DNA from: Guillardia theta CCMP2712
Taxonomy: Eukaryota; Protista; Cryptophyta
Assembly (NCBI RefSeq): GCF_000315625.1
Contig: NW_005434668.1
Location: forward strand, 505,808-569,807
DNA: 64,000 nucleotides
Direction: 5' to 3'
The position numbers were made by a program, and so were the translations under genes. Positions 9,863 through 63,985 of the stretch are shown here, in pieces. Every line of letters starts with the position of its first letter. Position 1 is the first letter of the stretch. The notes beneath the pieces were generated by a model that did not search any database, was not told the DNA's origin, and worked only from the letters and a program-made list of their open reading frames with translations.

Positions 9863-10758
9863 TTATGCCTCTTCGCCTTCAGAACGGGGCGACAGAGCTT
9901 CCTGTAACACAACGTTCAGGGGCCATGCTTTGGTCGCACAGCAAGGCCTGTTCACACGGCACACTCGCATACCTGCTTCGTACCCTGAACGTCTGCTGCG
10001 AGGAAATTAGGTACCCCTTCTTGAATTCGGAATCTGGACAACACGGAGATCAGGATGGTTCGAGAGGGTGGCAGCGAGGGGAAAATCTTTGCACATCATC
10101 TTCTTGGGTGATAAAACGGACCTTCTCTGTGTTGCAGGACAGACGAGCTGCCCCTCCATGACTTCTGTTTCGAATAAAGCTCTATGAAGCGCTCGGAACA
10201 TGTGGACGTCGCCGTCGTTGCAGGCGCTGCTGCAGTGAGGTCGCGCCATGCATCACACAAGGCTAACACCTGATCACTTCCGCCATGTCTTGTGGAAACT
10301 GGCGCTCAAGGCCGATCGATTCCTCCCCACCGACTGCCTGCAGGGCATCCAAGAACACCTGCGGAGCAGCATGTAACCCTTCATCCTTCCTCTGCCTCCG
10401 CCGCCGCCCCTCCACACCTTCCAGTTCAATCTCTCCAGCAGCGAGATGATTGTGTCTTGATCCACCTTGCTCGGCCTGATCTCTGCTCGCTCCACTTCGA
10501 GAGCCAGCGGGTATCTCTGCGTTCAGAGCAGCGTCAGGGCTGGCCTTGCGGCAGGAGCGCTGGCTGCACCTGCTGCTTGGTCAGACCAGGCACCGGCGAC
10601 GCGAGGAGGTTGTGGGTGAAGAGTTTCATTCCTCCTCGCAAGCGGAGCAGAGATGCCTTGCTGTCAGAGGAAGCCTCGCTGACGCTGGGCCCCGCTTCTC
10701 CGGGCCAGCTGCACAACACGGCGAACAGAACCAGCAGCGAGGCGCCGCGACTTGACAT
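9863..10758 (-). CDS. TRM112: TRM112 methyltransferase activator with N-terminal signal peptide + LRLRGG presequence
   Basis: MKLFTHNLL...YPL...LLERLNWKV...FRALHRALFETEVMEGQLVCPATQR|RFRIQEGVPNFL match Trm112; preceded by MSSRGASLLVLFAVLCSWPGEAG...SLLRLRGG. Confidence 0.88.
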
Positions 10759-11302
10759 GTGAGGAGACAAGAGGAGAACGGGCAAGTGAGCAAGGATGGG
10801 GGCGATTGTGGTCTTTGTTGGAAACAGGAAGGACAAGGTAACACAAGGGAGTGAAGGAAGTGGGAGTAGCCGATAGCACGAGGAAGACTGGGCAGAGGAA
10901 GGAAGCGGGGGAGTTGGAGGAGAACTGGAATTAAGAGGATAGGGATAAAGATTTCAAGGAACAGCAGAGAACAGGGAGGTGAAGGATGAGGAGGAGGATC
11001 TAGGCAATTAGAAAGTTGCTAGTGTCGATCGAGAAGGGAGGCAATAGGGAGCAAGAAGGAAGGGAAGAGGGAGGGAGGGAGGAGGGTTGGGGGATGGGGA
11101 GAGGATGGAAGGAAATTGGATGTTGATTAAGTGGAGGATGATGATTGAGTGGAGATGAAATAGCAGCAGAGGAGGAGAGGAGTGGATGACGACGAGGATC
11201 GTGAGGATCAGGATCGAGCGAGTGTTGATCCAAGGCGGTACAAGGAAGAGTGGGCGTTGGAGCGGGAGGAGCGAGAGGAGCGGGAAGTCTAAGAGTCGGA
11301 AC

Positions 11303-11538
11303 AGGGGCAGGGGCAGGGGCAGGGGCAGGGGCAGGGGCAGGGGCAGGGGCAGGGGCAGGGGCAGNNNNNNNNNNNNNNNNNNNNNNNNNNNNNNNNNNNN
11401 NNNNNNNNNNNNNNNNNNNNNNNNNNNNNNNNNNNNNNNNNNNNNNNNNNNNNNNNNNNNNNNNGATTCAGATGCAGGGGCAGGGGCAGGGGCAGGGGCA
11501 GGGGCAGGGGCAGGGGCAGGGGCAGGGGCAGGGGCAGG
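11303..11538. repeat. (GGGGCA)n microsatellite spanning a 100-N assembly gap
   Basis: Perfect hexamer repeats on both sides of the N run 11365-11464. Confidence 0.9.
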
Positions 11539-11872
11539 GGACGTGGTAGAAGTTGTGGGTAGGAGGGAGGAGGAAGCAACTGGTCGAGAAACGGGATTTG
11601 ATCACCCCCCTCTAGATGAAATAGATAGGGACATAGGTAGGGTGGGGTAGTGAAAGTGGTCGGAGCGAGGGAGGCCGAAGGAGCGTGTAGTAGTTGAGGA
11701 GCGAGGAGAAGGAAGAGGCAGAGGCAGAGGAAGAGGAAGAGGAAGAGGCAGGGGCAGAGGAAGAGGAAGAGGTAGAGGCAGGGGAAGAGGAAGAGGAAGA
11801 GGAAGAGGAAGATCAACATCGAGAGCCAGAGGAGGAGGAAGAGGAGGGAGGAAAGGAGCTTCAGGCTTGACG

Positions 11873-14800
11873 ATGCTCCGTCTCATCGCTTGCTTTTCTC
11901 TTTTCCTCTTGTCCTCTGGGTTTCAAGGAGTTTTCCATATGCAGAGCAGGAGCAGGAGTCTCCTCCTCTCCTGCCGCCCCTTCTACCTCAGAACTTCCCC
12001 TCGACGCGCTCACTCCAACTTGGCGAGCACCCGCATGCAACAAACGTCGGTCGGGGTAGGACCTTTGCCGACGGGATGGGGAGCAGAGCTGGGGCTGCAG
12101 GAGCAAGATCTTCTTCCTCAGCATCCTCGTCTGCTCACAGGCGCTCTCGACAACGGACTTCGTGAGTAGTGGGGAGAGGGGACAAGGAGGAGCGAAGGGG
12201 AGGAGAAATTTGTGTATTTGGAAAAGTTCTCAGAGATTACTCTGACTCTTGGTCAGGCTATTCGATCCTCGAGAATAGGAACCCAAAGAACAGATTCTAC
12301 GCCAACCTTGAAGTTCATTCCGGCAGTTTAGACGAGGACGACGAACAGCAGGTTGAGCATGCAAAGGAGGAGGAGCAGGAGGAGTAGGACAGTAGAGGAG
12401 GAACAGGAGGAGTAGGAGAGGGGAGGAAGAGTAGAAGAAGTGAGAAGGAGTAGGCGAGGAGAAACAAATAAAGAGTAGGATGAGATCGAAGGTGTGAGGA
12501 TGAAGAGAGCAACAGACAATAAGGAGTAGAGATGCGAAGATGCAAAATGCCACGAGCGAAAAAATCTGGAGGAGCAGGAGGAGCAGGGGAAGATAATGAG
12601 TGTGTGAATAGCTGATAGAACATATCAGGGGATCGCGCATTTCTTGGAGCATGTGCTCTTCTTAGGTACAGAGAAATACCCCAAGTCAGGAGACTTCAAA
12701 AAGGTTCGTTTACTCCTCCACCACCTCCTACCCATCCTCTTGCTCCCATCAGCTCGCTCCCAGTGATTGTTATCACCATCATCATCATCGTCTCCTCCTC
12801 CTCCTCCTCCTCCTCCTCCTCCTCCTCCTCCTCCTCCTCCTCGTATCATCGGCTCTTTTCATCGTGTAAATGCACGTTCCTTTCTCTTCCTCGCTCTCTT
12901 GTCTTCCTCCTCTGCTTCCTGCTCATCCTCTCCTTCAGGTCCTCTCTCGCCTCGGGATGAGCCAGCTGGCTGACGCCAACGCTTACACCGACTTTCGCTC
13001 CACCGTCTACACGCTCAGCGCACCAACTCGAGGAAGCGAGAAGAGGTCGGACGGAGAGAGGGAAGGGATGGGAGCGATGATAACGGAAGAGTTGCAGGCA
13101 CGCTTATGACATGGAGAAACTTTCTGGTGCAAGAAGAGACACATTGTTCCGTGCTGGTAATCTCCTCCTAACCCTCCTCCTCCTCTCTCGCCTCCTCCTG
13201 CTTCCTCTTGTCCCCAACCCCTTCCCTCCCCCACTCTCTCATCTCGCCCCTCTCTTCTCTCTCCTCCTTCCCCTCCGCTCTTCCCCTCCCTTTCAGATAT
13301 CAGGAGCAGCAGTTGAAGCTCCTCCTCCCCCTTCCTCGCTGTTTCTGTTCTAATTGCTGCTTGTACTTGTCTGGGACAGGGCTCGTCGAGTCTCCAGCTA
13401 CAATCAAGACACCTACGCAGCTGGAGGAGGAAGAGGGAGGGGAGGAGGAGGAGGAGAGAGGGAAGGGAGTTGAGGCTGCTGAGGACAACGTGGGGCTGGT
13501 GATCGACCTGCTGCATCAGATGACGTTCAAGGCTCTGATCCGGGAGGAGGACGTGGAGCGTGAGAGGAACGCTGTGCTCAACGAGATGCGAGACTCGAGC
13601 GACATCAGCGAGAGGATCGCGAGCAAGTTCTACCAGCAGCTCTTTGCTGAGACTCTCCTTCCCCGCCGCTTCCCCATCGGCAAGCTCGAGATCGTCCAGC
13701 GAGTCAACGCGGACGGTCTGCGGCGCTTCTACGAGCAGCACTACTTCCCTTCCAACATGCACCTCTTCCTCGTCGGCGACTTTGACGCCCACCGCGTCCT
13801 CCAGCACATCTCCTCCTCCTTCTCTGCCGAGCCGCCGGGCCCTCGCGCTCCTCCCTCGCACTCCCGCAGGGACTCGCTGGCGTGGGCAACGCCTCCTGGT
13901 CCGCTCCCTCTCTGGCCGTTGCGAGGGGCTCGGGTCGAGCATACCTTCGGCTCCCCCCCGTCGGTGCGGTATGAGCAGATCTCGCACTCGCAGGTGTCGT
14001 CGTTCTCGCTGACGCTGACGATGAAGGAGGAGCTGGAGAGCAACGTACTCGTGCGACATGTCTTCGAGGAGCTCGTGGACAGCCTCGTTGGCATGGCGCT
14101 GGAAGGGAGGTTCGAGGAGCTGCGCACCCGGGGAGGCGCCGCGGCGGTGGAGAGCGTTGACTGGATGTTCCTCAACTCAGCGCGTGAGGGGTGTGTGCTC
14201 AACTCGCTTGTGGTGACAAGCGAGGGGAGGAGCTGGAGGAGAGCTGCGCGGGTCTTCGCCAAGACCCTCCAGGAGCTGATCAGCTTCGGGCTCGTGCAGT
14301 CCGAGCTGGACCGCCTGCTGCGATCGCTGGTGAAGCAGTACAAGACGGACGTGGAACAGGAGGAGACGATGGAGTCTGACGAAGTGATGGAGGAGTTGAT
14401 GGAGTGCGTGGAGGCAGGGGACGCGTTCATGTCGGCGGGGCAGAAGTTCGAGCTGGTGAGGAGGATGGAGGAGGCAGTCACGCTGGAGCTCGTCAACCAC
14501 AGGGTCCAGCAGCTCTTCTCATTCGCTTCCCTTGCTGGCCGCAACTCAGAACTTTGCGCCTGGTTCGTGTGCGCGCCCAAGAGGGAGGGGCGAGCGCTGA
14601 AGGAGCTGAGCGAGGCGACGCTGCGGGAAGAGATGGAGAAGGCGACGGCGCGTCTTGAGCCCTACCGGGACGCGTCGGTCGTTCCCTCGTTCCTGTGCGA
14701 GGACGAGGAGATGGACGAGCGGATGCGGCGGCTGCAGCCATGCTTGGTGCCAGTGAGGTCGATGAGGACGGATGGGACGGAGAAGGAGGAGGGGACTGAG

Positions 14801-16243
14801 GTCCTGAGGGACCCGGGGACGGGGGTCAGGTTCATGGAGCTGAGCAACGGGATGCGAGTCACGGTGAAGGAGACGAGCTTCCAGAAGAAAGAGTTCGGCA
14901 TCGAGATCCGAGCGACGGGAGGGAGGGCGACGGAAGTGGCGGCGGGGATGAAGAAGGGTGCAGTGATGCTGGCGATCCAGGCACAGCTGAGGAGCGGGCT
15001 AGGGCAACACGACGAGGAGACAACAAGGAGGTACACGCAGCTGCACGCGATCGGGTTCGACGGCAGCTGCTCCATTGAGCAGTCCTCTTGCGAGATCGCC
15101 GCCTCCTCCTCCGAGCCCAACGCCCTCCGCCGAGGCCTCGAGGTCGCCCACTTGCTGCTGCGGGACTTCGCGGGGGAGGATCGGGCGCTGAGGAGGGCGA
15201 GGAGGGAGCTGAAGCTGCGCTGGGAGGCGATGGAGGAGGACATGGAGGTCCTTGTGGCTCGCACCATGATGCAGCTCCTCGTCGACCCTTCCGTTGATGC
15301 CTACGACTCCCTCAGCCTCCTCGTCTCTCCTGCCGACGCCGCCGCCCTCTCCCTCCACGACCTCCGCGAGGCCTTCCTGCTCGAGTTCGACCCCAGCAAC
15401 CTCGAGGTCGTGCTCACCGGCGACTTTCCTTCTGAGACTCTGCTGGACGACGTGCTGCGCTACCTCGGAACCCTCGAGACCCGAGCGCACAAGCTCCCTG
15501 CCCAGCAGGAGCTCAGCAAGTTCTCCTCCCCTCCTGGTGTCCTCCGGCCGCGAACCGCTCAAGTGCAGATCCCCGACGACTCACAGAGGACGTTCGTGTG
15601 CCTGGGCTTCCGCTCCCTCAACAGGTGGGGCTACAGCGCTTACGAGGAGGGGGAGGAGGGGATGGGGAGGAAGGACAGGTGGGAGGAGCACGGAGCGATG
15701 CACGCGAGTCGTTGTTTGAATCTGGTGGTGGACATGCTGAACAACCGGCTCTACGAGGAGATCCGCGAGAAGCACGGGCTCGTCTACTCCGTCAGCCTTA
15801 GCTGGGAGCCCTTCCTCCACCACCCCTACGGCCTCCTCACCGTCTCCCTCTCGCCCTTCCCCGACAGGATGGAGGAGGCGATCGAGCGCGTGCTGGGGGT
15901 GCTGGAGAAGTTCGTGGCCGAGGGCTTCAGCCGGGAAGAGCTGGAAGCGTCGCGGGGCCCGACGGTCAAGGAGGTGGAGGAGAATCTGAGGACCAACGAC
16001 TACTGGACGAGCCTCGTCGTTGGCATCCAGTCGCGCGGGGCCCTACCCAAGTCCTGCCGCTCCATCCAGCACATCGCCGACAGGTATCAAAGTCTGACGG
16101 AGGAGGAGGTGCTGGAGGTGGGAAGGCGAGCGCTGCGAGGGCTCAGGGAGCAGCTGGTCGTGGTCAAGGGCCTCAGCGATCCAAGCTTCTCCTCCGTCTC
16201 CGTCTTCCTCGAAAACGAGGACGCGAATGAAGGGCCCCGTTGA
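11873..16243 (+). CDS. SPP: Plastid stromal processing peptidase (M16 zinc metallopeptidase), bipartite presequence; multi-exon
   Basis: GALDNGLR|YSILENRNPKNRFYANLEVHSGSLDEDDEQQ|GIAHFLEHVLFLGT (HXXEH), NAYTDF, RRFPIG, ELSNGMRV, NNRLYEEIREKHGLVYSV; signal peptide MLRLIACFSLFLLSSG followed by F. Confidence 0.85.
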
Positions 16244-16308
16244 ATCTTGGCGTGCTCCTGTGCCGCTTGCACATGCTTCCTTGCCCCGTCTCCTGCCCCT
16301 GCCCTCTA

Positions 16309-17478
16309 TCAATCCTCCCTCGCCTCCAGCATGTCAAGTCGTCTCCTCAGCTCCTCCATCTCCAGCCTGTGAGCCTCCGCCTGGGTCGCGACCTGCATGG
16401 GGTCAGCGGAGGGCGAAAGATAGGAGGAGGGGGGACGCTTCACCGTCTTCCTCAACATTTCTTCGCGCTCCTGCATCTCCCGCTCCCTCTTGATGGAGGC
16501 AGCAAGCGCCCGGCTCTTGAAGTCGAGCTGCTTCTTCAGCTTCGTCCTCTCGTCCTCCAGCTCTCTGATCCGCTCCTCAAGCTCAGCCACCGCCTGCCTG
16601 CCTCCCTCCGGTGCCTCCCCGTCCGGCACCTGGGCAACCATCGCGGCATGTTGAGGCGAAGCATCATGGGCAACAAGACGAGGAGGAGCAAACTCCTCGT
16701 GATGCGACACTGCGAGCAGAAAAGAAACGTCGGCATGCGCCCCATTCAACCATGACGCCCCGCCCTGCATGCTGTGATCCTCCACAAGTTCCTGCAGCCA
16801 AGGGTCCAGCAGCTCTGTCCCACTGTTGGCATCAAACACGCGCTGGGCTGGAGGGCGGAGCCTGAGCGCGGTGGTGGCCAAGGCCAGCAGCTCACCGCGG
16901 GTGGTGGGGAGGACGATGGTCTTGTGCTGGGAGGCAGAGCGAGGCAAGGACCCGACGGAGTAGACGACAGCCTTCTTACCTGCGACATGGCCGAGGCAGC
17001 GAGGAAGGGACGGCGAATGCTTCGCCTCCATCCTCTCTCTCTCCTCCCTTGTCAAGGGCCTCTCCTCGGATGGGCGCGCCTGCAGTTTCCTCTTCTTGTC
17101 GCTCTCCGAGTGGATGGAGGAATGCTGGTGAGCTCGAGAAGTTTCGCGTGGAGGGTCGGAGGTCAGGGGCTGGTCCAACGCGAGCTGTTTCTTCATCTGC
17201 TGAGCCAACAACGATCGATGGTTCCTTGCCCCTTCGTCTCCTCCCCCTCGCTCCTCCCCCGTCACGTCGTGAGGCCGTAAACGCGGCGTCTTGCTCTCAT
17301 GGTCATACTTACCACTCCTGTGATCTTCCTCGGTCTCTGCCTGCACTCCCTGCTCCTCCTCGCCTTGTTCTCTCTCCTCATCCTGATCAACTTGTCCTTC
17401 TCGTCCTCGTCGACCCTCTCGTGATGCATGCAGTCGCTGCCTTAGCTCATGGATCCGCTGCTTCTTCTGCGTGTCCAT
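16309..17478 (-). CDS. Coiled-coil protein with a doublecortin/ubiquitin-fold-like segment
   Basis: Intronless ~390-aa ORF; KTIVLPTTRGELLALATTALRLRPPAQRVFDANSGTELLD resembles DCX-like domains; C-terminal coiled coil. Confidence 0.5.
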   Translation of the reverse strand: MDTQKKQRIHELRQRLHASREGRRGREGQVDQDEEREQGEEEQGVQAETEEDHRSGKYDHESKTPRLRPHDVTGEERGGGDEGARNHRSLLAQQMKKQLALDQPLTSDPPRETSRAHQHSSIHSESDKKRKLQARPSEERPLTREERERMEAKHSPSLPRCLGHVAGKKAVVYSVGSLPRSASQHKTIVLPTTRGELLALATTALRLRPPAQRVFDANSGTELLDPWLQELVEDHSMQGGASWLNGAHADVSFLLAVSHHEEFAPPRLVAHDASPQHAAMVAQVPDGEAPEGGRQAVAELEERIRELEDERTKLKKQLDFKSRALAASIKREREMQEREEMLRKTVKRPPSSYLSPSADPMQVATQAEAHRLEMEELRRRLDMLEARED

Positions 17479-19900: not shown

Positions 19901-20044
19901 TCGACAATCAATAGCCGACACACAGGACAAGTTGGACAAGGAAGGAGAAGGTCGGCAAGTGCGCCCAGATACTTGATCTGTGTGGGAATGCAATACATTC
20001 ATTATCAGCACAGCGAGAAGATCAGGCAGGACACAACAACGACT

Positions 20045-21149
20045 CTAGTATCCTCGTCCTGTGTGATCGTGCTGCCACCAGCTATCCTTTGCGGAGCCTG
20101 CCGTCCACCAGTCGCCCTTCCCTTTGATGTCCTTTGCTGGATCGTGAACATTGAGGGCATCCGTAGCCTCCTTGGAGTACTCCTTGAAGTAGCGCTGAGC
20201 AGGACCCTCCAGCTCGCTTCCACTTCCCTGCCGCCACTTCAGCGTTGGATCGTAAACAGCTCCCCAGCGCTCCACAGGCGAAGTCGGCACAGTGGGTCTG
20301 GCTGGTCGCCTCTGCTGCTTGCTGCCGGCGGCAGGAGCTGCCTTCTTGCCAGGAGCAGCTTTCTTGTTGTCAGGTTTGACGGCACTCAGCGACTGAACTC
20401 CAGCCTTCTTTGATGGAGAGATTCCGTTCAAAGTGTCGAGCACGGAGTCAACATCAGCCGTGCCAGAGAGTTTGCGATTCTCAGTGATGTCCTTCTGAAA
20501 GTTCTCCTCGAGCTTTCCTTGCGCGGTTTGCTCATTCAGTGCAGCTTTCATCTGGCCGTGAGCGATGCGCATTCCACGAGCACGACGGTCGACCGATCCC
20601 TTGATCTTGGCCAGGCTGTTGAGCTCAGCATTGAGCGTCTTTTGTAGCTCAGCAGTTTCGCGAGGAAATGCCCTGCGCTCCGCAGGAGGAAGCTGAGCCT
20701 CAAGCGCAGCAATGGTCTGACTTGCCTTGCCCACAAAGTCGCTCAGCTTTGAGCGTCCACGGGGGAGTTGCGCGAGGGAGCCTGTCCGAGCTTGCTTGTG
20801 AGCCTGAGGCTTAGAAATCAAGGCGTTGGCCTCGGAATATTTCTCGATGGACTGGAGGCCCTTCTCCGTTCTAGAATACAAATCGCTCAGCTCAGCCTCT
20901 TCCTTGGGAAAGGCACGAGCCACGAGGCCCCGGGGCGCCTCAGCTTGAAGGACGTCAACCTGTTTCTCTGCAGATCTCAATAGGGAGCCAAGGTTTGTCT
21001 CCGACCTCCTGGTCGAAAGGAGCGAAGTTGCACGGTGATGAGGCGAGATGAAGGTGAGAGTTACAAGGGAAGCGATACAGGCAAGCGCTCCCAGCTTCAT
21101 TGCCGTCCTCCTCCCCTGCACTCCTCCTCGAACCGCCGCCATGCCCATG
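20045..21149 (-). CDS. Hypothetical protein with N-terminal hydrophobic anchor and an internal duplicated helical repeat
   Basis: Intronless ORF; LGALACIASLVTLTFI; ARAFPKEEAEL / RRAFPRETAEL repeat. Confidence 0.6.
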
Positions 21150-29723: not shown

Positions 29724-32138
29724 TTAGTTTACATCTTCAAACGTTACAATGTCTTCATCCACATCATCCAAGGAAAGATAATCTTTTGACACGAGTCAGC
29801 AACAACGTTCCCTTCTTGCCTTGAGAATTACCTGGAGCACGATTTCCCACTGATAGAATCGGGTGGCTGTCACCGGCTGCAAGCTCCTCAACTCGCCTGT
29901 TTCCAGAAGTCATGAGGTTATGGCAGTTGTTGGCTTCACCTTATCAAGTCTTCAAAATCTGACTTATCGTCACAATAGAATCCCAAGGCAAGAGATGGAT
30001 CGATGTGCGCTAGTGACATCTTTCCTGGGTGCGCACAATGAAAAGATGCGACGTTGATGTTCTTTCTGATCGATTGATAAGGCTAGAACGGAAAAATATC
30101 AAAATGGATAACAATCGCATCCTCATTCGAACCTGAGTTATGTGAGGGTCCAGATAGTAAGCATTATATCCTCTGACACCAACAAAGTAGTATGAGTGTC
30201 TTGGCCGTCCACCAATGAATCCCAGGCTCTGCAAATGCTTGTCAATTCGAGACAAGTGCTGATCTTCAGACCTGAGGCAAACTGAGGTATGACGCAAGCT
30301 TTGGAATATAACTTGGATTGATCCTATCACTGTGAGCCTCTCAATGGCGAAATCTAAACGTTTCACATCCTTACCTTGCACCGAGTCTAACGGGTACGAC
30401 AACAATTAGTGGCCTCCACGAGCAAGGTTCCCTTGCTTGAGCCATTCTGCTGCAGTTGGTACCCGAGTACGCCTGTGCAAGAGAGAAAGAGTTAGCAGAG
30501 ATGTGGAAGATAATCAAGTTATCCAATAATCATAACATACCTGTCGAGAACAAGCCACACTCTCAGCCAAATCACGATAGATACAGTGATCTTCCACAAA
30601 GAGCATTCCAGCTGTGTGGCACGGCCAGACACCCTGAACTTCGCATTGAGAATGAAGAGAGCATAGAAAAATTCAGACGGACCTCATTCATATTCCATAT
30701 ATGCCTGAGGACTCGACAGATTGTGTCTGGTCCAAACCATCTGATTTGTGCAACTAAGTGCAAGGTCGGTCAAAAGAATGGAGCATTACTGTCCAATGCT
30801 GCGATGAAATTGCTGTCCAGTTTGTGCTATACGATGTATTGAAAACATGCTCGCTGGATGGTCTTCAAACAACTTCAAAATTTGTCCATACCTGCAGCAC
30901 AATGGTTGAGATATAGCCCCATGTAGCATCAGAACTATAACCAGCGAGGAGTGGGCTTGTCCCTTCGCAATCGCCAATCTCTCCTCAAGTGATGATGTAG
31001 CAATGCTTGTGCCAGCATCATTTGGCCACTGCGCAGCATGCATCCCCAGCCGCTGTCTGAAGTAAGATTGCTCGGTTCGATTGGAGAAAAACCAGATCGA
31101 TATGTGAACCTGACGCAACAAATCATCACCGGCCATATCATCGTGGAGTTGTTTTTCAAAACTGAAGATGAAACAAAAGGAGAGAAATGACATACCAGAG
31201 CCTTGATTGAATGTCGTGTTTGAAAGCTCTTTGTGCGCGCATCCACACCGTTTGCTGGTCGGTTGTACCGCGATTTGTAGCATTGCCACGGGGAGAATCT
31301 GGTCCAACTTTATACTTCCATCCCAAAACCCATGCTGGAGCACATGAACCATCAAGAAATTGCCTCTTGTCTAGTTCTGGCGGAGGTCCATCAACAAAAT
31401 TGCGAAAAATGTATGAACGGTCTCTGCAACTTTACGTGTAGCGTTTGCCATGTTGTTGTGTGTGTTCAACACCAGCTGTCGAGACAGTGGAAGCAAAATG
31501 CGGGGTTCGACAAACATGTACTCGCTATCAAGCTTGCTTCTAGGAGAGTCCGAGGCATCGACGCTGGATGTAAGGCAGTAGGCTCTGTCGACGAGCTCGA
31601 CCTCACACTTAAACTTGACATCAGCCATTTCACGCATCCAAGGCTCTAATTCGTTCTCGTCAGCTGCGAAGTAGTAGTCGCGGAGTATCCACCACTGACT
31701 GTGCTTGGGAGAAACGCTTCTCTGTGACGATATTTTGATTGCCACAGGGAACCTTCCTTCGTGTCCATCTACAACCAAGTTTTGCACCTTGCCAAATTCT
31801 GCATCATCTAAACTCACGATACCCTTGAGCTCCCATTGTGCTGTACCGCCGTTGAAGGGAAAGACGTGTGACCAGTATTGAAGTTCACAGTCCTCAGTGA
31901 TAACAACATATCGCTTCTTCCAACCCCTGCCATGATATGATAATTTGTGAAGCCAACCCTGCTTGATTATACCCTTCCTGCTATCAGGAGACAAGTGCAT
32001 GTAGGACTGATACTCATCAACAGGCAAAGGTGGTATATGGGGAGTTTCGTGGTTGGAAAACTTCGGCAAAGGAGCGCAATTGCTCCCCATCACCCTTGAG
32101 TTGGGAGAAGGAAACGATTCGACAAACCCTGCAGCCAT
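29724..32138 (-). CDS. ATG4: ATG4 cysteine protease (C54) with N-terminal PH domain; multi-exon
   Basis: TYRSGF...[20 protein letters not shown] (catalytic Cys), [25 protein letters not shown]; PH motif [34 protein letters not shown]. Confidence 0.85.
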
Positions 32139-53068: not shown

Positions 53069-53078
53069 TTTTGGCGCG
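53069..53078 (+). promoter_or_regulatory. E2F-like site TTTTGGCGCG
   Basis: Matches the TTTSSCGC consensus, ~350 bp upstream of the DNA polymerase ATG in a divergent promoter. Confidence 0.5.
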
Positions 53079-53428
53079 GGGTGGCGTGCGAAGCTGCTAG
53101 TGCCGGGGGCAAGCGTGAGGCAGAGAGAGAGGGGAGAGGGAGAGGGAGAGAGGGAGAGAGAGAGAGAGAGAGAAGTGGGGGAGAGGAGAGTAGAAGAGGA
53201 AGGAGGTGATACTGATTGTGCGTATAATGGTTTATCACCACACACCTTCGCAAGGGAGTTGACGTATTGACATCAGTAGTGTATGGCAATCAACTATGAC
53301 TTCCTAAACAACACAAACGATATGATGCTGCCTTGACAAAACAATTCAAATCATGATAAGTCTGTCCGAAATGAAACTCAAAGATAGGCTTTCATTGGAA
53401 TAGACCTTTGACATCCTGTCGATTGGAT

Positions 53429-56400
53429 ATGGCGAGAGAGCTTTCTCGACTCGCCTCTTTCGGTGTATTTTTATTTTTTATGCTCCTTCTTGTCAGCTTG
53501 AGTGAGGGGTTGTTGTTGAATCCCCGATTTGTATCGCTTGACAGCACGTCGACCAAAGCAAGTTTGCATAAACATGCTCGACTCGTTCTACGTGGGGGCG
53601 ATGACATGCTGCAATCTGATGCCGACAGCGTTATGGAGGATGCAGAAAGCGAAGAGGAAATCGAGCAGCTGAGCGAAGATCTTCCCGCTACTGAGACTCT
53701 CAAAGCTAGTGATGCCCTTCATCCGAGAGGTGCGTCAGAGTTGGAATCAAGTATGTCAGCTCAAACGAAACGAAACCTTTCAACGAAGCTTTCCTCATTG
53801 CGACGGGATCTGCCCATCGATCTCAACGAGACGTTGACATTCCAGTTACTTGATGTAGATTACACGCGCCCACAGAAGTCAAGTGAAACGATTGATCAAG
53901 GAGATTTCACCGTGAACGCGTTTGGGGTCACTCAAGAGGGTAAATCGGTACATGTTGCCATCTCAGGAGTTCTCCCGTACTTCTTCGTAAACCTTCCCAA
54001 GGCTTTAAATGAAGAGGAATGTAAGGTATTTCTTACGAAAGCTATCAAGAAGTTCGAATCGCAAGCAAGTCAAAACTACGGGTATTCGAGCTATCAGATC
54101 TCCGAATCGTGCAGGATTGTTAATTGCAGTTACGTCAGAAGAAGGAGCATTTGGGGCTATCAAAGAAATGAAAGTCATTACATGCAGATACTCTGTTCAA
54201 ACCCAGAGACTGTCAAGAGAGCAGCTACAATATTTAGACACTGGGATGCCTCACTTGACATGCAGGAGATATTTCCCAAGGGTCCAATCGTCTTCCAAAC
54301 TTTTGAGTCCAATGTGGACCCAATTACGCGGCTAACGACGGACTCAAATATCGTCATGTCTGGCTGGGTACAAATACCTGTCAACGATCTAAAGTGGAGC
54401 GATTCAAGAACAAGACTGTCACATTGCGACATCGACGTGGCTGCACATTTTTCAAAAGTGCAAGCTCTGCCCGAAAAAGAAGACGTCTCCCCCTTCTTGA
54501 TAGGATCGTTTGATATTGAGTGCGTGCCTGAAGGTGGAAGGGGGTTCCCAGATCCTAGCAAGCCATTGGACAGATGTATTCAAATCGGAACCATCGTCTA
54601 TAGATTCGGCGACTCAAAACCTTTAGCGAATATTGTTTATTGTTTAGGATCAGCATCTGTTGATGATGAATCTATCCACATTCGGGAATTCGAAAGAGAA
54701 GAAGATCTTCTCATGGCTTGGCAGCACCTTGTCGTTCATGAGCTTGACTTGGACCTCTTGACTGGGCACAACATCTTCAAATTCGATCTCAACTACATAG
54801 CTCGGAGGGCCCAAGTTCTAAAACTCCCAGAATTCTTCGAACTTGGTAGAATGAAAGGGAAGTATACTGCTATTAAGACCACGGATAGCCAAAGCAAGGC
54901 ATTCGGCCATAATCAATTTCACTACCTTCCGATGACAGGGAGGATGCAGATGGATATTTACCAGGTCATGACCAAACAACACAAATTATCTTCTTACAAA
55001 TTAGACAGCCTTGCTAAACACTTTCTTGGGATGCAGAAGGATGATGTCTCGCCAAAACAGATCTTTGAATTCCAGGTGAAAGATGCCTCTCACAGAGGCA
55101 TCGTTGCAAAGTATTGTGCGAAAGATTGTGAGCTTGTTTATCGCCTCATCGAGCGACTGGATGTTCTTCCTCAATTCCTGGAGATGTCCAAGGTCACAGG
55201 GGTAACTATGAACGACCTCAACACGCGTGGCCAGCAGATCAAAGTTTTCACTCAGATAGTACGTGAGGCTCGAGCGTCAGACTTCGTGATCCCTGACATG
55301 CGAGCTGCCCCCACATCAAGGGATGACGTGCAGTACCAGGGCGCTTTTGTGCTCCCTCCGCAACGCGGCATCTACCACGAACCGATCGCTACCTTAGACT
55401 TCGCGTCGCTTTACCCCTCCATCATCCGAGGAGACAACTTATCCTATGAGACTCTTGTGCAGAACGAGTGTGAACTAGACGAAGACACTCCGGTCTCTTG
55501 CATCCAAGTCGATCATGGAACGATCTGGGATGCTGAGATCACGATCGTGAAGGGTTCGTGCAGGTGTGTTGGAGCACTAGATGACGTTCAGTTTGTAAAG
55601 CTGATGTCCATGGTGGAGCCGGGAATGAAAGTTGTTTTCGGGACTTCCAAGAAGACAGATCCAGTTGTTGGTCCGACTTATCAAGTGAAGAGCGCAGGCG
55701 GAACTGCAATCGAGCTGGTTGACCCAATCCATCACATTGAAAGGGAGTTGACAGTCAAACGCGTCAAACTCTTGAAGGAGTACACCTACAAGTACGTACA
55801 ACACGTGGAAGGAATCCTCCCAAGAATCTGCAAGAATCTGCTCACTGCAAGGAAGAAGGCGAAGAAGGAAATGGCTCTCACGGACGATCCCATCAAGAAG
55901 GGCTTGTTGAATGGCAAGCAGTTGGCCCTCAAAGTCTCTTGCAACTCCGTCTATGGATTCACTGGCGCTGGCAGGGGTATGCTGCCATGTTTGCCGATCG
56001 CTTCATCGGTCACTGCTATCGGCCAGCAAATGATCAAGACGACAAGTCAGACTGTGCAAGAAAACTTCAATGCTACAGTCATTTATGGGGACACGGACTC
56101 GGTGATGGTGAACTTTCACTGCGGAGAAGGGCCGGAAGCTCTGAAGAAAGCTCTCGAGCTCGGGCAGAGGGCTGCAAAACTCGTCACGAGCAAGTTCAAG
56201 CCTCCCAACGAGCTCGAGTTCGAGAAGGTGTACATGCCGTACATCCTTTACAGCAAGAAGAGGTATGCGGGGCAGATGTATACCAGTCCAGACAAACCCG
56301 ACAAGATCGACGTGAAGGGACTTCAAGTTGTTCGGCGCGACAACAGTGAACTTCAGAGGGATCTGATGAAGAACCTGATCAAGACGATGGTGAAGGAAAT

Positions 56401-57189
56401 CACACAAGATGAGCTGACATGCATGGACAGTGGGGCAAGCAAACTCGAAGTGCTTAAGTCGCGCATTTCAGATCTAGTCCGTTCCTATAATCAAGATCTT
56501 GTACAAGGAAAATTCCCTTTGGAGAAGTATGTGATCTCGCAATCCATCTCCAAGAAAGGCTACGAGAAGACAAATGCTGCAGGCTTCAAGAGCGCAGCCC
56601 TCGGCCATGTCAAACTTGCAGAGAGGATGGAAAAACGAGAGCCTGGGACCGGCCCGGTAGCAGGGGACCGGGTGCACTACATCATCGTGAAAGAAGCCCC
56701 CCACCTCTCGCACATCAAGAATCGAACAATCGATGGCGTGACTTACGCGGCCAAGGACTGGCCCCCTCGCCATGAGAGGTGCGAAGATCCTACGTACGTG
56801 AAGGAGAAGAATTTGACAGTCGATCTCGCATACTATTTGGAGAACCAGCTGAAAAATCCGGTGACGTCACTGCTCGAGCCTGTCTACGACAAGAGCGAAG
56901 AGCTCTTTCTTGAAGCAGAGCGAAATCTCAAGAGCAAGTTGTCTGGAAACTTGATGTTGACCTCATTCTTTGCTCCAAAGCAGACAGAAAATGCACGTTC
57001 CAAGGTAGATGGAAAGAATGACGAAGTGAAGAAAGACAAGGGCAAAGGTAAGTTTGAAGTGGCAGGGACGAAGGTGAAAGACAAAGTTGATGTTTCTCTT
57101 CAGGTTGTGCAAGCGGTGGGACTCGAGTGATGGAGGACTTCTTCAAGAAAAAGAGGAAGTCAGATGAAAACAAGGAGGTATGCAGCTGA
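53429..57189 (+). CDS. Family-B DNA polymerase (Pol delta/NCLDV-like) with signal peptide + RLVLRGG presequence; one predicted 3' intron (57048-57103)
   Basis: ExoI SFDIEC, ExoII GHNIFKFDLNY, ExoIII KYCAKDC, DFASLYPSII, KQLALKVSCNSVYGFTG, YGDTDS, KKRYAG, GDRVHY; no CysA/CysB tail. Confidence 0.93.
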
Positions 57190-57316
57190 TGGAGGGCATC
57201 ATGAAAGAAACCTGAGGGAGATCTTTAATTTTGTACAAATGGATTTGCAAGAATCTCATCCTTGCACTTCTCATTGAGAGACACGTCGTGCTCTGTTTAG
57301 GAGATGAAAGTGAAGT

Positions 57317-59431
57317 TCACGTCTTTAGCCCATCGTAGCAAGTCTTTCCAGCGACATTCGTGAGTGTATCGTCTGCTCCTTTTGAGATCAGATAGTCTGC
57401 GAGCTCCTTGTACCCGACCGAGAAGGCGAAGTGCAGAGCTGTGTTGCCCTGGCGATCAGCCTGATTGGGATCGGCTCCCATACGCAAAAATCTCTTGGCT
57501 AGTTTCTTGTTCCCGTTCTGAGCTGCGACCATCAAGGCCGACTTGCCGCTGGCGTCTCTAGCGTTGACGTCAAAGCCTTGAGCGAGCACCTCCTCTATGT
57601 CCGCCTTGTTCTTGTGCCTTATGTGCCCGAAAAACGCTTCCAAGTCATTCGCGCTCAATTTCTTGACTGGCACAGCACTGGAAGCATCGTCACGGGGACT
57701 GTTGTCCCTACTTTCAGGTGGCTCTGTCTCTGGTCCTTCCTCCATGCCTTCTCCAACCGTCAACCCTCCTCCTTGCTCCACATTGTTCCGAAAACTCTCT
57801 GTGGCTGATGCCTTCGATTTCAAAGTTTCGAATTCCTTCCGTCGGTCTGAGATGACCTGAGAAGATTTGGCGTGCTGCGGGCTTGTCTTGCCGAGCTCAG
57901 AGAGGAGGTAGACCTGCTGCACCTCCTGCCCTGTCTTCTTCCTCGCAAAGGTCGCCTGCTCTTCTGTCTCCTTGCGATCCTGCAGCCGGATGCCCTCCAC
58001 GTTGGACCTGAGCCTCCGAGAATCTTTCAGTTTGCTCTGAAGTTTCGCGACAAGAGGCGAGAAGACGCTGTCATCGCTTCCTTCTGCCGCGACAGCATGC
58101 GAGGAGGCCTGACGCTTCGTCGCAGACAAGGCAGACTTGGTTCTTGATGTTCTTAGCTCCTCAGTATGTGCGTCCCCTCTCGCTCCTTCAGCACCATCCG
58201 TGCTGAAGATGACCCTGGGGTTGGTGAGGTCATCCCCCTGCAGGTGTCGTCGGATCGTGTCTTCGATCCAGCTCTCGAGATTTTCAAACATTCGAACTTT
58301 CTCAACCGCTCTCCAGACTCCCTCTTCAAAGTCTTCCTCATCATCCTTGAGCGTTTGCCCTGCAGAGGTCAGCAAACCTTCACCTGACCTCTCCTCGCTC
58401 CTCGTGCTTGCTCTTGACAGGTAGAGCGACCCAGGACCTCGGACCTGCATGGCATTTTGCTCCATGTCCACGGACTTCAACTGCATCTCCTTCATCGCAG
58501 GCCCTTGACTTGCTCTCGCGCTCCTGTACACCAGGCCCAAGGGTTTCTGGTCACCGAACGACAGAGACGATTCTCGTAGAGTGGTCAGAGACTGGGCGAG
58601 TGAAGGAGGAGAGTCCTCGGGCTCTCCTTCCTCGAACAAATGAGGGGCGATGTAACTGTCCGTCTTCATGAGACGCGGCGACGTCAACTGGCCCATGTCT
58701 GCCTCTGCGATCCTGCGGCGTGATAGGCTGATGGGCGGCAAGCTGACCTGCGATTGAGCATGAAGCACTTGAGAATGCACTTGCTGCTGAACCGAATCCA
58801 GCGAAAGTTGGGGATATGATGCCGCAATCTCGTTGACCTGCCTCAATCCAAACTGATGTGCGATGGCTGCAATCTTCGTGTCGAGTCTCGAGGTGGTTCG
58901 GGTGAGGGACGACAGCCGCTTTCTGATAGCTGATCGCTCTTCTTCCGAGACCAGGTTGGAGAGATCCTCCTCGCTGCGGACGTTGTTCCTCGTTATGATC
59001 TCCGCCCTCCGGCTCGAGGATCGACGCCAAGGGAGGTCAACACTGGACGACCTCTTGCTACGAGACTTGTTGCTTCCTTTCTTGCTCGCATCCGTTCGAA
59101 TGTTTTCGTAGTCTCTGCTGCGTTTCTCGTGCATTGTCATCGCCTCGAGCTTCTCATGCCGCCTGATGCTCGCAACCTTCATGTGATGATCTGACTCTAT
59201 CATCTCAACAGTCGCTGACTTCTCGAGCAAAGCCTCCAGCAGTTCCTCGTAAGCCTCCCGTATCTTGTTTCCCAGCATCTGCTTTTGTTCAGCGCTTCCC
59301 ATGGTCGACTGAGCTTGTCGAACAACTTTTCTCTGCTGTTCAACGTACATTTGATCTGACAGAGCAGCAAGAGCATCGCGGATGTCCCTGGTTGCCATAC
59401 TGCTGCAATGAGCGAAGCCTCTAGAGGTCAT
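57317..59431 (-). CDS. Protein with C-terminal ankyrin repeats
   Basis: Intronless 704-aa ORF; GKSALMVAAQNGN, GADPNQADRQGNTALHFA. Confidence 0.8.
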   Translation of the reverse strand: MTSRGFAHCSSMATRDIRDALAALSDQMYVEQQRKVVRQAQSTMGSAEQKQMLGNKIREAYEELLEALLEKSATVEMIESDHHMKVASIRRHEKLEAMTMHEKRSRDYENIRTDASKKGSNKSRSKRSSSVDLPWRRSSSRRAEIITRNNVRSEEDLSNLVSEEERSAIRKRLSSLTRTTSRLDTKIAAIAHQFGLRQVNEIAASYPQLSLDSVQQQVHSQVLHAQSQVSLPPISLSRRRIAEADMGQLTSPRLMKTDSYIAPHLFEEGEPEDSPPSLAQSLTTLRESSLSFGDQKPLGLVYRSARASQGPAMKEMQLKSVDMEQNAMQVRGPGSLYLSRASTRSEERSGEGLLTSAGQTLKDDEEDFEEGVWRAVEKVRMFENLESWIEDTIRRHLQGDDLTNPRVIFSTDGAEGARGDAHTEELRTSRTKSALSATKRQASSHAVAAEGSDDSVFSPLVAKLQSKLKDSRRLRSNVEGIRLQDRKETEEQATFARKKTGQEVQQVYLLSELGKTSPQHAKSSQVISDRRKEFETLKSKASATESFRNNVEQGGGLTVGEGMEEGPETEPPESRDNSPRDDASSAVPVKKLSANDLEAFFGHIRHKNKADIEEVLAQGFDVNARDASGKSALMVAAQNGNKKLAKRFLRMGADPNQADRQGNTALHFAFSVGYKELADYLISKGADDTLTNVAGKTCYDGLKT

Positions 59432-59934
59432 GACCGAGACTGTCTATACGTCTTGCGCTTCTTGTCGTTTCCGACAATTCTTGCCCCAACTTTCCTCGTC
59501 CTCGCCTACCGCATCCTCTCCCGTTTACTCCTTTCCCTCCCGCCTGCCATCATCAGGCCCTCAAAGGGTTGCTAACGGTTGTGGCCCACCTCCCCTGACC
59601 GACCAAGGTTGGGCTATGAGGACTATGTGAAGGAGAAAAAGTGAAGCGGGCCATCCCTTCAAATTTGTGGCTTCCACGAAACCCACAAATGGCAGTTTCA
59701 CCCCCTTTTTAAACCACAAAAGAACCGGTACTCTGATAAAAAACCCATTCATAACACAATCAGCACACGTCCACGCTCTATCTCCACCCCCCTCCCCGCT
59801 CATGCAGGAAGAAGAGTTTCTGGGTCAGACCAGAAGAAGCAGTCAGTTCATAAGACTGAGCTCAGAGGACGAGGGTGCCCTGGGAGTCCTGTCAAGAAGT
59901 GGGAGGCGGTAAGAAGAACCCAGGCCCTGTCACT

Positions 59935-60115
59935 NNNNNNNNNNNNNNNNNNNNNNNNNNNNNNNNNNNNNNNNNNNNNNNNNNNNNNNNNNNNNNNNNN
60001 NNNNNNNNNNNNNNNNNNNNNNNNNNNNNNNNNNNNNNNNNNNAACTCCCCCTCCCCCTCCCCTCCCCTCCCCTCCCCTCCCCTCCCCTCCCCTCCCCTC
60101 CCTCCCTCCCTCCTC
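59935..60115. repeat. N gap followed by (CCCCT)n microsatellite
   Basis: Seen directly in the sequence. Confidence 0.85.
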
Positions 60116-60234
60116 TCTGACTCGATGTCCGTTTGTCTTGTTTGCAAGAAGCTTTTGTCCCTCACTTTCCTCATCCGGTCCTTTCTTGCAGGCATCTATT
60201 TGACATTTCGTATCAGTTGATGTCGTGTAAGACT

Positions 60235-61817
60235 ATGGAATCCATCGAACGAGATGACTTCGAAAATCTTCTTTTTCCATCGAACATTTCTACGGAAACA
60301 CAAGATAAAAAGTTGATTAGGTTTTACCTCCTCGTCTGATCCTGCAGTATGTTGATTGACTGCTCCAGGTCATGCTGGGTGGATGAAACCAGCTGGGAAG
60401 AAGAGGAGGGCGAGAGTTCCTTGACAGAAGCAGGTTCGATTGACTTCCCGTCCGGGCCGAGGTAGACGAGGGAGACTGGTGTGAAATTCTCAGACAACTG
60501 AGCTTGCCGCAGCTGGTCGGAAACGTTTGATGATGGAAGCTTGCAAGGGGTTGGCGCCATCACGTGGCCGGATGGGTCATGCTATCACGGTGATAGCGTC
60601 GAGTCGTGCCGATGGTAGTTTGAAGGTCGGCAGGTGGACTGAGCGACAACATGCGGCATGGGCATGGAACGTACAGGTGGGCAGACGGTTGCACCTACGA
60701 GGGAGACTATGAGAACGACTGTCGCCATGGTGAGACCATCCTCCTCGAGGGAGTGAATGTTGCGACACTGTCCTGGTCAGGGCGAGGACACTACAAGGGG
60801 AAGCACCACCAGTACGATGGGAGCTGGAAGCATGACATGATGGACGGAGAAGTGATGAGCTGAGAATTGTGAAGGGGCAGCGCTGACGCTGAGTGGTCAG
60901 GGAGTTTACGAATGTCTGGATCAGAATATGAATGTCTTCCGAATCTTTCAAGGGAAATTTGAGAAGAACGCTCCTATTTCTGGTATGCTGCAAACAAGCG
61001 ATGGCCGGAAACGAAATGTGTGCTACGATGGTGATACGCCAGTGACTGGACATCCTTGGTGAGGAAGAATATCCAATAGGTGGAGTAACTGATTCTTTCC
61101 TTGGCATCAAGGCTGTGGAAGTCCTTGCGGTGGACTGAAGTCTGATCTGTTGCAAGAATGTCTCTGATAATGCTGTTAGCAGTGAAGATGAGCAGCTGAC
61201 GAAGCCGCTGGGGGAAGGGAGCGAAGAGTTTGAGATGGTTGCCGATCTCTTCTTTGCTTCAGTCCCTCGCTCCTCGTATGTCGAGAGAGGGAAGTGCAAA
61301 GGAGAGAAGACTGAAGGAAGCATACTCATGCAGGTTTGAAATCACCACCATCAGTCGGGTACACAACTATGGTCTTTGCAATCTCTATGAGGTCCAGGTG
61401 AAGCAGATTGACCGATCTCGAGCTTGACGTGTCAGTGCTGAATGAACCGATAGAGAGATCGCATACGCAACGAGATCCTCAAGCGAGGGATAGCCTGGGA
61501 GGCTTCCGTCATGGAGCGATGGGCATTTCAACGGCCAGAACCGCCAGATCATGGGCCGATGTCGTTCGTGTTACCGCAACTTGACAGCAGGTATATGCAT
61601 GGAGCAGACTTGTCTCTCATCAAGATGCTGATCATCTCGCAGCTGGGAGGACCCCTTGCAAGCAGTTATCAACGAGGGCTTCCTGGTGAACTCAGGTGAG
61701 CACAAGCATGCCGGGGCATCAAGTCTGATGCTGAGCTATAGGCTCCTGCCATGGTAGGCAGTTCGGGGCCGGCAAATACTTCTTTCGAGACGCCAAGTGA
61801 GTTGAGAGGAAGTTGAT
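60235..61817 (+). CDS. MORN-repeat protein; multi-exon
   Basis: MRHGHGTYRWADGCTYEGDYENDCRHG, GRGHYKGKHHQYDGSWKHDMMDGEG; boundaries approximate. Confidence 0.7.
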
Positions 61818-62960
61818 GCAGAGAGTGACTTCATGACAGCAAACAGCTTGGCTGCCACAGTGTCTTGCCAAAAGGCTCTCAGAAGACCTCGATGCTGCTA
61901 GCTCGAGTACGTTTGACCTTCACGTCACTGTCAGTGGCTAGAATTCTCAAGCTTGTCAGGTGGTGGTCGGACGATACGCGTTGGGTCAACGTGAGTGCCT
62001 TATGCCTCCGATTGATCCGACTGGTATGAACAACTCTTCTCCCCCCTTGTCTTCGCGCATTAGCTGAACTGAAGCTAATGGCGCAGGTAATCCTGGCCAG
62101 CACTACCACAGCATGGTCGATGACGTCGTCAACCCAAGCTGCTTTGTCATCCAGGTATCATAATCCTACTGCTGCTGCTCCTGATCTGGCACGTCCTCAC
62201 GTCTCAAGCAGAACAGTGCAAGCGCGTACCCAGCGTACCAGATCGATTACCGACCAGTCGAAAACCACTTACCCTGTACCATGTCTTCGGGGCAAAAGGT
62301 TGGCAACAAGAGGTGGAGGAGGAGGTGAAGGAGGAGAAGCAGGGGATCTGACTTCTCTGTGCACAGGAAGTGGGGAACAACCGCAGGTCCAACCCGCTGC
62401 GCTCTGTGATTAACCAGAAGAAATGCGTAGAGAAGCAGAGGCAGAGCTAACCACCGATCGACCTCGCGCAGGATGACGACAATCGTGATTCCCGCACAAG
62501 TATATGGCTGTACTCTTAGCCTAGTGCGAAGAATATATGAATTATGATGTATATCTCAAGGGGAAAATATCTCTCGTGTCTAACAGCCACTGATCAACAC
62601 AAGATGCTTGACAAGTACCACTGCAACTAAAAGTCGAGCCGACCCTCACGATTCTGTGGAGACAATTCATATTTCTTCACAAACGGAGAAACAATGTAGC
62701 CCTCTCAATTGGTTGAGAGTGGTAGATCATCACATCAAAACATAGCCACTGTACATTCGAGGAGTCATGCTAATGATGCTTGCCCACTTGACCCTTTGGG
62801 TGTCGAGTTTTCCTTTTACCCGGGTTCCGGCGATTGTTTCCTTGAAAGAAGACGAATTCTCAACCCCCCTCACACAACGAAAGACGTGGAATTACCATAG
62901 AACGGAGATATCTTCGCGTATAACGCTTTGCGAGTTTCAATTTTCTTGTCGCCGACCATG

Positions 62961-63985
62961 TTACTGAGGGCAAACCAGAACTTTGCCTTTCCTGTTCACC
63001 ACTTTGAACTTGGGATGTGAGAGGAGGAGAGGAGTACCTATCGGATCTTTCTCTCTTCCACATTTGATATCGGCCCCTTGTTGGACAAGAAGCTTGACCA
63101 AGGATGTATGACCGCAATGCGCAGCAGCAGACAACGGGGTGAAGCCGATATAATCTTTGTGCACTCCGGTCTGAGCATGTAATCAGTAAGATATGGGAGA
63201 TGTGAGAAGCCCTGACCTTAGGCTGCACAAGATAGTTGATGTCTGCCCCTGTCTGAAGTAGATGCTCGACAATGTGACGTGCTCCTTTCACGCAAGCCTG
63301 TAACTCTTCATCAGTTCTTGTGACCTAGCAATCCCTCAACGACCGCAATGAGTTTGGCGTTGATGTCCATAGACTTCTTCGGCTTGAAAGGCCTGATGGA
63401 CTCCCACATGTGGCTGCGGAACCCGATTCCTAGCGGCACAGGAGAGTCTAAGTGAGATATGGGGAGATGAGGTTGTACGAGATATGGGGAGAGGAGGGTG
63501 TACTCACGGATAGGGATTGTAGCTGGGTCAGTGTGTACGGAACGAGGAGATGCTTGCCACAACACCTTCGCCAGACAAGTGTTAGAACATAGAGATGGCG
63601 GATGGAGAAAGTGATTGTCCATACGTCTCTCACGACCTCCTTGCCGTGGTATCGCTCCAAAGCAGACAACTTGCGGGGGCCGGTACAAGGGCGAATTGTT
63701 CGCAACAGCTGTTCAGGATCAGGAGAGTGAAGCGAGTATGAAATGGAGAGCAACCGGGTAGTTGTTCTTGCGGGGAAATCTCCTGGGGCATACGCTGGTT
63801 CTCTGCTTGACGGTGCCGCGACTTCCTGTGCATTTGCCTCCACGGAGAGAAAGAACCGACCAGGAGGATGATACAGGACGCCATGGCGCAACATCACAAG
63901 AGGAGAGTGCAAGGGTTGAGAAGAAGGAGAGGAGGAGGAGGATGGACAGGGGGCTGCGGCTGAAGGGGGGGGCAGCGGGGGCCAT
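62961..63985 (-). CDS. Ankyrin-repeat protein with signal peptide + VLSLRGG presequence; multi-exon
   Basis: IVEHLLQTGADINY, GFTPLSAAAHCGHTSLVKLLVQQGADI; N-terminus SILLLLSFFSTLALS...WSVLSLRGG. Confidence 0.7.

Follow-up and report, generated by a model that had tools for sequence, protein, structure and literature searches.

Bipartite leaders that direct proteins to the periplastid compartment (PPC) of complex plastids consist of a signal peptide and then a transit-peptide-like (TPL) segment and do not carry an aromatic residue at position +1 (Gould et al. 2006, as related in PMC5443833 and PMC12136025). According to the accepted rule, an aromatic residue or Leu at +1 sends the protein on to the stroma (PMC4494062). 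In the recent ASAFind 2.0 (2025) the +1 position alone separates PPC from plastid proteins, the absence of Phe there being named as what discriminates most clearly, and the program recovers only 25% of the known PPC proteins (PMC12136025). A “TPL peptidase” for periplastid residents has been postulated but not named (PMC5756292), and the escape of imported cryptophyte proteins from the periplastid proteasome has been called a conundrum (PMC12412216, PMC5756292). Here we describe a conserved motif, in its fullest form L-x-L-R-G-G, that closes the leaders of three genes in a 64,000-nucleotide stretch of DNA (the window) from Guillardia theta CCMP2712. The polymerase locus among them places the window in nuclear DNA, on scaffold JH992970.1 at ~506-570 kb, and its host is a cryptophyte that retains a nucleomorph.

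The three genes encode TRM112, a delta-like family-B DNA polymerase and, as a candidate, an ankyrin protein. Their starts follow a common plan: an initial Met, a hydrophobic signal-like core, a Ser-rich linker of 20-30 amino acids (aa) and L-x-L-R-G-G. In all three leaders the core is free of charged residues, 11-17 residues long and located inside the first 30 aa, with the reservation that the start codon of the ankyrin gene is uncertain. Translation confirmed the three sites reported in an initial annotation of this DNA, at 10630-10650 (minus strand), 53579-53599 (plus) and 63836-63856 (minus). A six-frame translation of the window contains RGG 155 times, LRGG nine times and L-x-L-R-G-G four times. 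The full motif lies no more than 70 aa from the start in 3 of 45 crude signal-like starts of open reading frames (ORFs), the majority of which are spurious, and these three are TRM112, the polymerase and the ankyrin candidate. With an expectation taken from the window's own motif frequency, three occurrences stand against ~0.1 expected (Poisson P ~1e-4). RGG alone, by the same reckoning, is not enriched after signal-like starts in the window (3 seen, ~3.8 expected). A Markov-simulated null was dropped because it yielded too few signal-like ORFs and too few RGG; the window's own frequencies were used instead.

In TRM112 (GUITHDRAFT_161000, 194 aa; 9863-10758, minus strand) the leader spans 43 aa (10630-10758), begins with the Met at 10758 and runs through the hydrophobic core and the Ser-rich linker to ...KASLLRLRGG. 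The sequence LLRLRGG (10650-10630), and within it LRLRGG (10647-10630), abuts the canonical Met1 of TRM112 (MKLFTHNLL) without any spacer, and for this reason the motif reads as a cut site. Exons 1 to 3 (10758-10570, 10516-10418 and 10358-10270) are separated by GT-AG introns, and further exons lead to the stop codon at 9863. This hand-built model agrees with the annotated protein (P0066), matches PF03966 (Trm112p) as well as the Trm112 entry of NCBIfam, and shares its N-terminus with a transcript-derived G. theta protein from MMETSP (P0086). The TRM112 of Hanusia phi (P0069) reads SLRLRGG↓MKLF, where the arrow marks the junction of leader and mature protein, and has an otherwise different linker. 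Between the two species 49 of 54 residues of the mature part and all six residues of LRLRGG next to Met1 are identical, compared to only ~10% of the linker, which in addition contains a 7-aa indel. A TRM112 homology search, run at a strict E-value and over few word-sharing candidates, returned matches in G. theta and Hanusia only.

The polymerase (53429-57130, plus strand) is encoded by one uninterrupted ORF of 1233 aa with the Pfam domains DNA_pol_B, exo1 and POL3_N. Its 57-aa leader (53429-53599) comprises a 17-residue hydrophobic core and a linker ending in ...ARLVLRGG (RLVLRGG at 53579-53599), and is followed by an acidic stretch. At 100% identity the ORF matches a G. theta CCMP2712 protein listed as a partial “DNA polymerase delta catalytic subunit”. 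The NCBI model (P0001), however, is a partial 910-aa protein that begins at about residue 181 and misses the N-terminus, and is therefore mis-annotated; the full 1233-aa ORF was not found in the protein collection searched. A transcript-derived protein of Hanusia phi (P0089, 1218 aa) is collinear with the G. theta polymerase from the first Met. The two share 4 of 23 residues in the linker but 8 of 9 in RLxLRGGDD, and the Hanusia leader ends in IRLALRGG↓DD. At the C-terminus, a PIP-like box (NLMLTSFF) and a Lys-rich tail are present in both species, and Pfam did not detect the C-terminal Zn-finger (CysA/CysB; PF14260) in the G. theta ORF.

A search with the N-terminal 400 residues, followed by cluster members and contigs, added at least five further cryptophyte-like polymerase lineages, found in metagenomes of both marine and freshwater origin. 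The linkers of these lineages are unrelated to that of G. theta, yet RGG is invariant and is preceded by L, V or M; the leaders end in ...CALRGG↓QDD, ...RRVRGG↓QDE, ...CPMRGG↓E(D/H)D and ...RSMRGG↓QDD. In an alignment with five metagenomic orthologues, the first columns without variation are R55, G56 and G57, and RGG is kept in every orthologue with a readable N-terminus. A distant relative (P0061) shows DVGG in place of RGG, but its N-terminus is unclear and broken by introns, which makes it uninformative.

The polymerase gene of the uncultured cryptophytes contains introns or has been split by a prokaryotic gene caller. Its neighbors are an ankyrin membrane protein (L050, 1287-2255, minus strand) or a PDZ protein (contigs L047 and L051, upstream of the polymerase), and beyond a nearby ankyrin gene the locus has no conserved synteny with G. 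theta. One cryptophyte-type polymerase fragment (P0090, in the 90% cluster of P0003) was deposited under a “Promethearchaeia archaeon” metagenome-assembled genome (MAG); it probably comes from a eukaryotic contig that ended up in an Asgard MAG during binning.

In the third gene, exon 1 (63794-63985, minus strand) starts with the Met at 63985 and encodes a signal-like core within a 50-aa leader that ends in ...SVLSLRGG (VLSLRGG at 63856-63836). In our hand model four canonical GT-AG introns join it in frame to downstream exons at 62899-63708 (63708-63625, 63565-63508, 63429-63325 and 63284-63217, then the repeat exons). The corresponding NCBI model of 133 aa (~62899-63438) carries Ank_2 and misses the signal exon. 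Exon 1 and the ankyrin repeats probably form one gene. Upstream of Met 63985 the exon-1 frame continues without a stop and includes two more ATGs (MLFYRSSAM... and MTLTHTYS...; L001, ~20065-20194, minus strand), so it is uncertain where translation starts and hence whether the hydrophobic core lies at the N-terminus. The sample thus comprises three cargo families, two of which are secure.

All five leaders from Guillardia and Hanusia contain L-x-L-R-G-G, which corresponds to L71, L73, R74, G75 and G76 of ubiquitin. Tail and fused protein read LRLRGG↓M (TRM112), LVLRGG↓D (polymerase) and LSLRGG↓K (ankyrin) in G. theta, and LRLRGG↓M and LALRGG↓D in Hanusia. In these leaders and those of their relatives Gly-Gly is followed by M, D, K, Q or E, whereas Pro does not occur at this position. 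How far does the likeness to ubiquitin extend? When aligned with ubiquitin residues 40-76, nearly every leader resembles it in the last 4-7 residues only; the alignment for TRM112 is longer, yet gapped and mostly mismatched. Against sequences of the PDB, TRM112 exon 1 matched polyubiquitin where two of its repeats join (LRLRGG↓MQIF vs. LRLRGG↓MKLF). No Pfam domain was found in the TRM112 leader, the only leader scanned alone. We considered whether the leaders might be decayed ubiquitin or a shuffled common exon and rejected this idea, because the alignment is significant only through the tail. The initial annotation had described a ubiquitin-tail mimic without a ubiquitin fold, and these comparisons bear it out. 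Its choice of L-x-L-R-G-G as the shared motif, on the other hand, holds for Guillardia and Hanusia and has to be relaxed to [L/V/M]-R-G-G for the other cryptophyte lineages. Judged by the comparisons across species, selection keeps the motif at the seam of leader and mature protein, whereas the remainder of the transit-like peptide is free to drift.

Where would such proteins be needed? MCM, GINS and RFA have their genes in cryptophyte nucleomorphs, whereas DNA polymerase has none there (PMC5443833, PMC6559170); nucleomorph DNA polymerases must be imported, and the enzyme was still to be identified in 2017 (PMC5443833). Of the cargoes considered here, TRM112 acts together with eukaryotic rRNA/tRNA methyltransferases as their partner, and the polymerase is a replicative enzyme of nuclear type. 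The latter also occurs in several uncultured cryptophytes and qualifies as a candidate nucleomorph replicase; the three products probably serve the PPC or the nucleomorph. The proposal that the cargo suits this destination, made in the initial annotation, is supported by the literature for the polymerase, as a function absent from the nucleomorph-encoded set, and is no more than plausible for TRM112 and the ankyrin protein. For G. theta ~2,400 nucleus-encoded periplastid proteins have been estimated (PMC4494062), so two or three such genes among ~20 in the window are unremarkable.

The +1 residues, which we guessed by the -3/-1 rule, are less straightforward. Plausible choices are G or W for TRM112, E or L for the G. 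theta polymerase, S or D for the ankyrin protein and F for the Hanusia polymerase. The signal peptide of the latter (P0089, residues 20-30) probably ends ...SEG↓FLF, compared to ...SEG↓LLL in G. theta (53490-53520). With W, L and F among the plausible residues, some leaders would count as stromal, and the earlier statement that the three leaders lack an aromatic +1 is not secure. A stromal reading makes little biological sense for cargo of this kind, and a nuclear-type polymerase with a stromal +1 residue is at odds with the simple Phe rule for sorting between PPC and stroma.

We hypothesize that the nucleus-encoded TRM112, polymerase and ankyrin protein are sent to the PPC and the nucleomorph of the G. 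theta complex plastid by a bipartite leader made of a signal peptide and a short TPL segment. Translocation into the PPC by an ERAD-like (SELMA) route would precede a cut after Gly-Gly by a PPC-resident protease, which would remove the leader and free the mature protein; in TRM112 this cut would expose the native Met1. The motif lies at the exact seam of a fast-evolving leader and the mature protein, which is the signature of a processing site, and it is a candidate for the site of the postulated TPL peptidase. For the protease we would favor a cysteine type with specificity for the ubiquitin tail, and this is the least certain step. A nucleomorph-encoded protein with a Ufm1-peptidase domain (Gt2_270 in G. 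theta) is conserved in four cryptophytes (PMC6559170) and may be regarded as one lead, a candidate enzyme. We place this account as a whole, from bipartite leader to hydrophobic-Arg-Gly-Gly processing site, ahead of its rivals but somewhat below even confidence; its single central claim, removal of the leader in the PPC at hydrophobic-RGG, is likewise tentative.

The PPC destination, cleavage after Gly-Gly and a deubiquitinase (DUB)-like agent are inferred, and several observations weigh against the account. Only the tail resembles ubiquitin, and ordinary DUBs need the ubiquitin body; a tail of 4-6 residues without it is a poor substrate for them. The conserved core over all lineages is only [L/V/M]-R-G-G, with L-x-L-R-G-G restricted to Guillardia and Hanusia. 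The diatom periplastid DUB, ptDUP, has been reported to be absent from cryptophytes (PMC12412216). In addition, a cut after Gly-Gly would bare D, E, Q or K, which are destabilizing N-termini where proteasomes are kept. The RGG of the polymerase also opens a conserved acidic N-terminal block, so its conservation could reflect a function of the mature protein. Only three cargo families were sampled, the third with an uncertain start and gene model. Finally, a scan of ~90 kb of other cryptophyte nuclear DNA flanking the polymerase found, apart from spurious repeat frames, no further gene with a signal and RGG; few PPC genes are expected in DNA of this extent.

A first alternative is that the motif is the cleavage site of a metallopeptidase of the MPP/SPP type (M16) with Arg at -3, and that the ubiquitin likeness is incidental. 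M16 enzymes read Arg at -2 or -3 and are the peptidases known to remove presequences in plastids and mitochondria. This would agree well with Arg as the one invariant charged residue, with a conservation beyond Guillardia and Hanusia that is limited to [L/V/M]-R-G-G and does not extend to the ubiquitin-like L-x-L, and with the presence in G. theta of M16 enzymes that bear bipartite leaders, one of them in the window. The latter, a PqqL/SPP-like zinc peptidase (11873-16243, plus strand) with M16 domains and PDB relatives, is transcribed divergently from TRM112 across an assembly gap; in all probability it is either the stromal processing peptidase itself or related to it. Its first exon (11873-12166) encodes a signal peptide, a Phe at +1 and a Ser/Arg-rich transit peptide (...LLSSG↓FQGVFHMQSRSRS...), and the HFLEH active-site exon lies at ~12630-12695. 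The enzyme thus has a leader of the stromal Phe type and is not an obvious resident of the PPC. RGG is absent from this leader, and this contrast within the window speaks for our main reading. Both Gly residues are invariant, though known R-2/R-3 sites need none, and the 5/5 match of the Guillardia and Hanusia leaders to five positions of ubiquitin would be left as a coincidence. We therefore consider cleavage by an M16 enzyme unlikely.

Alternatively, the motif might not be cut at all and could act as a sorting or handling signal, for example as a handle for SELMA/Cdc48-Ufd1 or as an element that retains proteins in the PPC against the plastid envelope translocon. The motif is conserved at a fixed place in the leader, and because W, L or F at the plausible +1 would mean stroma, another determinant of PPC residence may be needed. 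Several polymerase linkers contain no Lys for ubiquitination, which also suits a handle of this kind. A precedent exists in Toxoplasma PUBL, where the RGG that comes before the ubiquitin-like mature domain is not cut and can be dispensed with (PMC5487736). However, the distance from the signal peptide to the motif varies from ~20 to 45 aa across the leaders, and the direct contact with Met1 in TRM112 looks like a cut site rather than a binding patch. An uncut signal is accordingly improbable in our judgement.

The least likely explanation is that there is no shared function, with RGG arising by chance in Arg/Gly-rich leaders of a GC-rich genome and its conservation reflecting kinship or a polymerase-specific N-terminal motif: RGG alone is indeed common, only three families were seen and the polymerase lineages from metagenomes are rather closely related, but three of the four full L-x-L-R-G-G in the window lie at leader ends, two unrelated families retain the motif across species while the neighboring residues turn over, and in TRM112 it lies outside the mature fold.

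Could processing at hydrophobic-Arg-Gly-Gly be a general feature? As a more far-reaching and rather doubtful extension, we propose that it is the processing code of many of the ~2,400 periplastid leaders, read by a DUB/ULP-like cysteine protease that replaces ptDUP, with the cut acting as a retention switch. If so, TPL removal in the PPC would halt onward import even with an aromatic +1, and the cut would determine where the mature protein begins and perhaps, through this, the half-life of cargoes like the nucleomorph polymerase. These questions bear on how the leaders of periplastid residents are removed and how the residents are kept from the stroma, in a group of algae without ptDUP, the only proposed periplastid deubiquitinase (PMC12412216). 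A conserved motif at the leader end would provide a cut site, a handle on the protease and a feature whose presence could be used to predict the periplastid proteome. The analysis also points to a candidate for the nucleomorph replicative DNA polymerase.

The window contains two assembly gaps, and neither touches the three motif-bearing reading frames. The first (11365-11464) lies within a (CCCTGC)n microsatellite in the intergenic region between TRM112 and the divergent M16 peptidase gene, ~600 nucleotides upstream of the TRM112 ATG. The second (59935-60043) adjoins a (CCCCT)n repeat and has a 704-aa ankyrin ORF on one side and a MORN gene on the other. Hexanucleotide (CCCTGC)n, trinucleotide (TCC)n and pentanucleotide (CCCCT)n microsatellites occur at 11289-11560, 12790-12845 and 60044-60110, respectively; two of them adjoin the gaps and probably account for the breaks in the assembly. 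The 704-aa ORF (57317-59431, minus strand) has C-terminal ankyrin repeats, is missing from the NCBI scaffold annotation and is residue-identical to a sequence in MMETSP/UniRef (P0087); it has neither a signal-like start nor an RGG leader. An exon at 30786-31355 (minus strand) shows a weak match to the catalytic domain of Peptidase_C54 (ATG4), a family that cleaves ATG8 after a C-terminal Gly; a link to the motif is not established.

The leaders can be compared with several known systems. Bacterial double-glycine leaders also end in Gly-Gly and are cut by the papain-like C39 cysteine peptidase domains of ABC exporters, coupled to transport. Those leaders, however, are bacterial, have another upstream consensus and lack a signal peptide; the residues upstream of Gly-Gly in our leaders do not follow the double-glycine consensus L-S-x-x-E-L-x-x-I-x-G-G, and their context is eukaryotic and nuclear. 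The R-2/R-3 sites of M16 peptidases (MPP, SPP) likewise have an Arg near the presumed cut at the leader end, which would be at -3 here if the cut follows Gly-Gly; we know of no Gly-Gly requirement for these sites, and the enzymes that use them belong to another class. PUBL is a protein of the periplastid compartment, the presumed destination of the G. theta cargoes, and has RGG just before the mature domain, but unlike in those cargoes this domain is itself ubiquitin-like.

The same tail is found in the precursors of ubiquitin, NEDD8 and ISG15 and in ubiquitin fusions, which are cut by DUBs after LRGG: TRM112 has LRLRGG, and the Hanusia polymerase has LALRGG, the form found in NEDD8. In contrast to ubiquitin fusions, no beta-grasp domain was detected ahead of Gly-Gly, either by alignment of the leaders to ubiquitin or by Pfam in the TRM112 leader. 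For the coronavirus papain-like protease (LXGG↓) and the adenovirus protease ((M/L/I)XGG↓X), hydrophobic-x-Gly-Gly suffices and a folded ubiquitin is not needed. These enzymes are viral, but their consensus fits the [L/V/M]-R-G-G↓X of the leaders. To our knowledge, no such short-motif protease has been described in the periplastid compartment, and we did not search for one here.

The leaders are similar to the periplastid leaders of cryptophytes and diatoms in their hydrophobic signal, their short Ser-rich segment and their cytosolic or nuclear-type cargo for the nucleomorph compartment. They differ in the hydrophobic-RGG end, where described periplastid leaders have no conserved C-terminal element, and in that they do not clearly follow the +1 rule. 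Apart from the RGG of Toxoplasma PUBL, we found no earlier description of LRGG or RGG in connection with Guillardia, the nucleomorph, the periplastid compartment or transit peptides in the searchable literature, although the supplement of Curtis et al. 2012 could still hold one. What is new is thus an undescribed conserved terminus, known from three cargo families, on an otherwise known type of bipartite leader.

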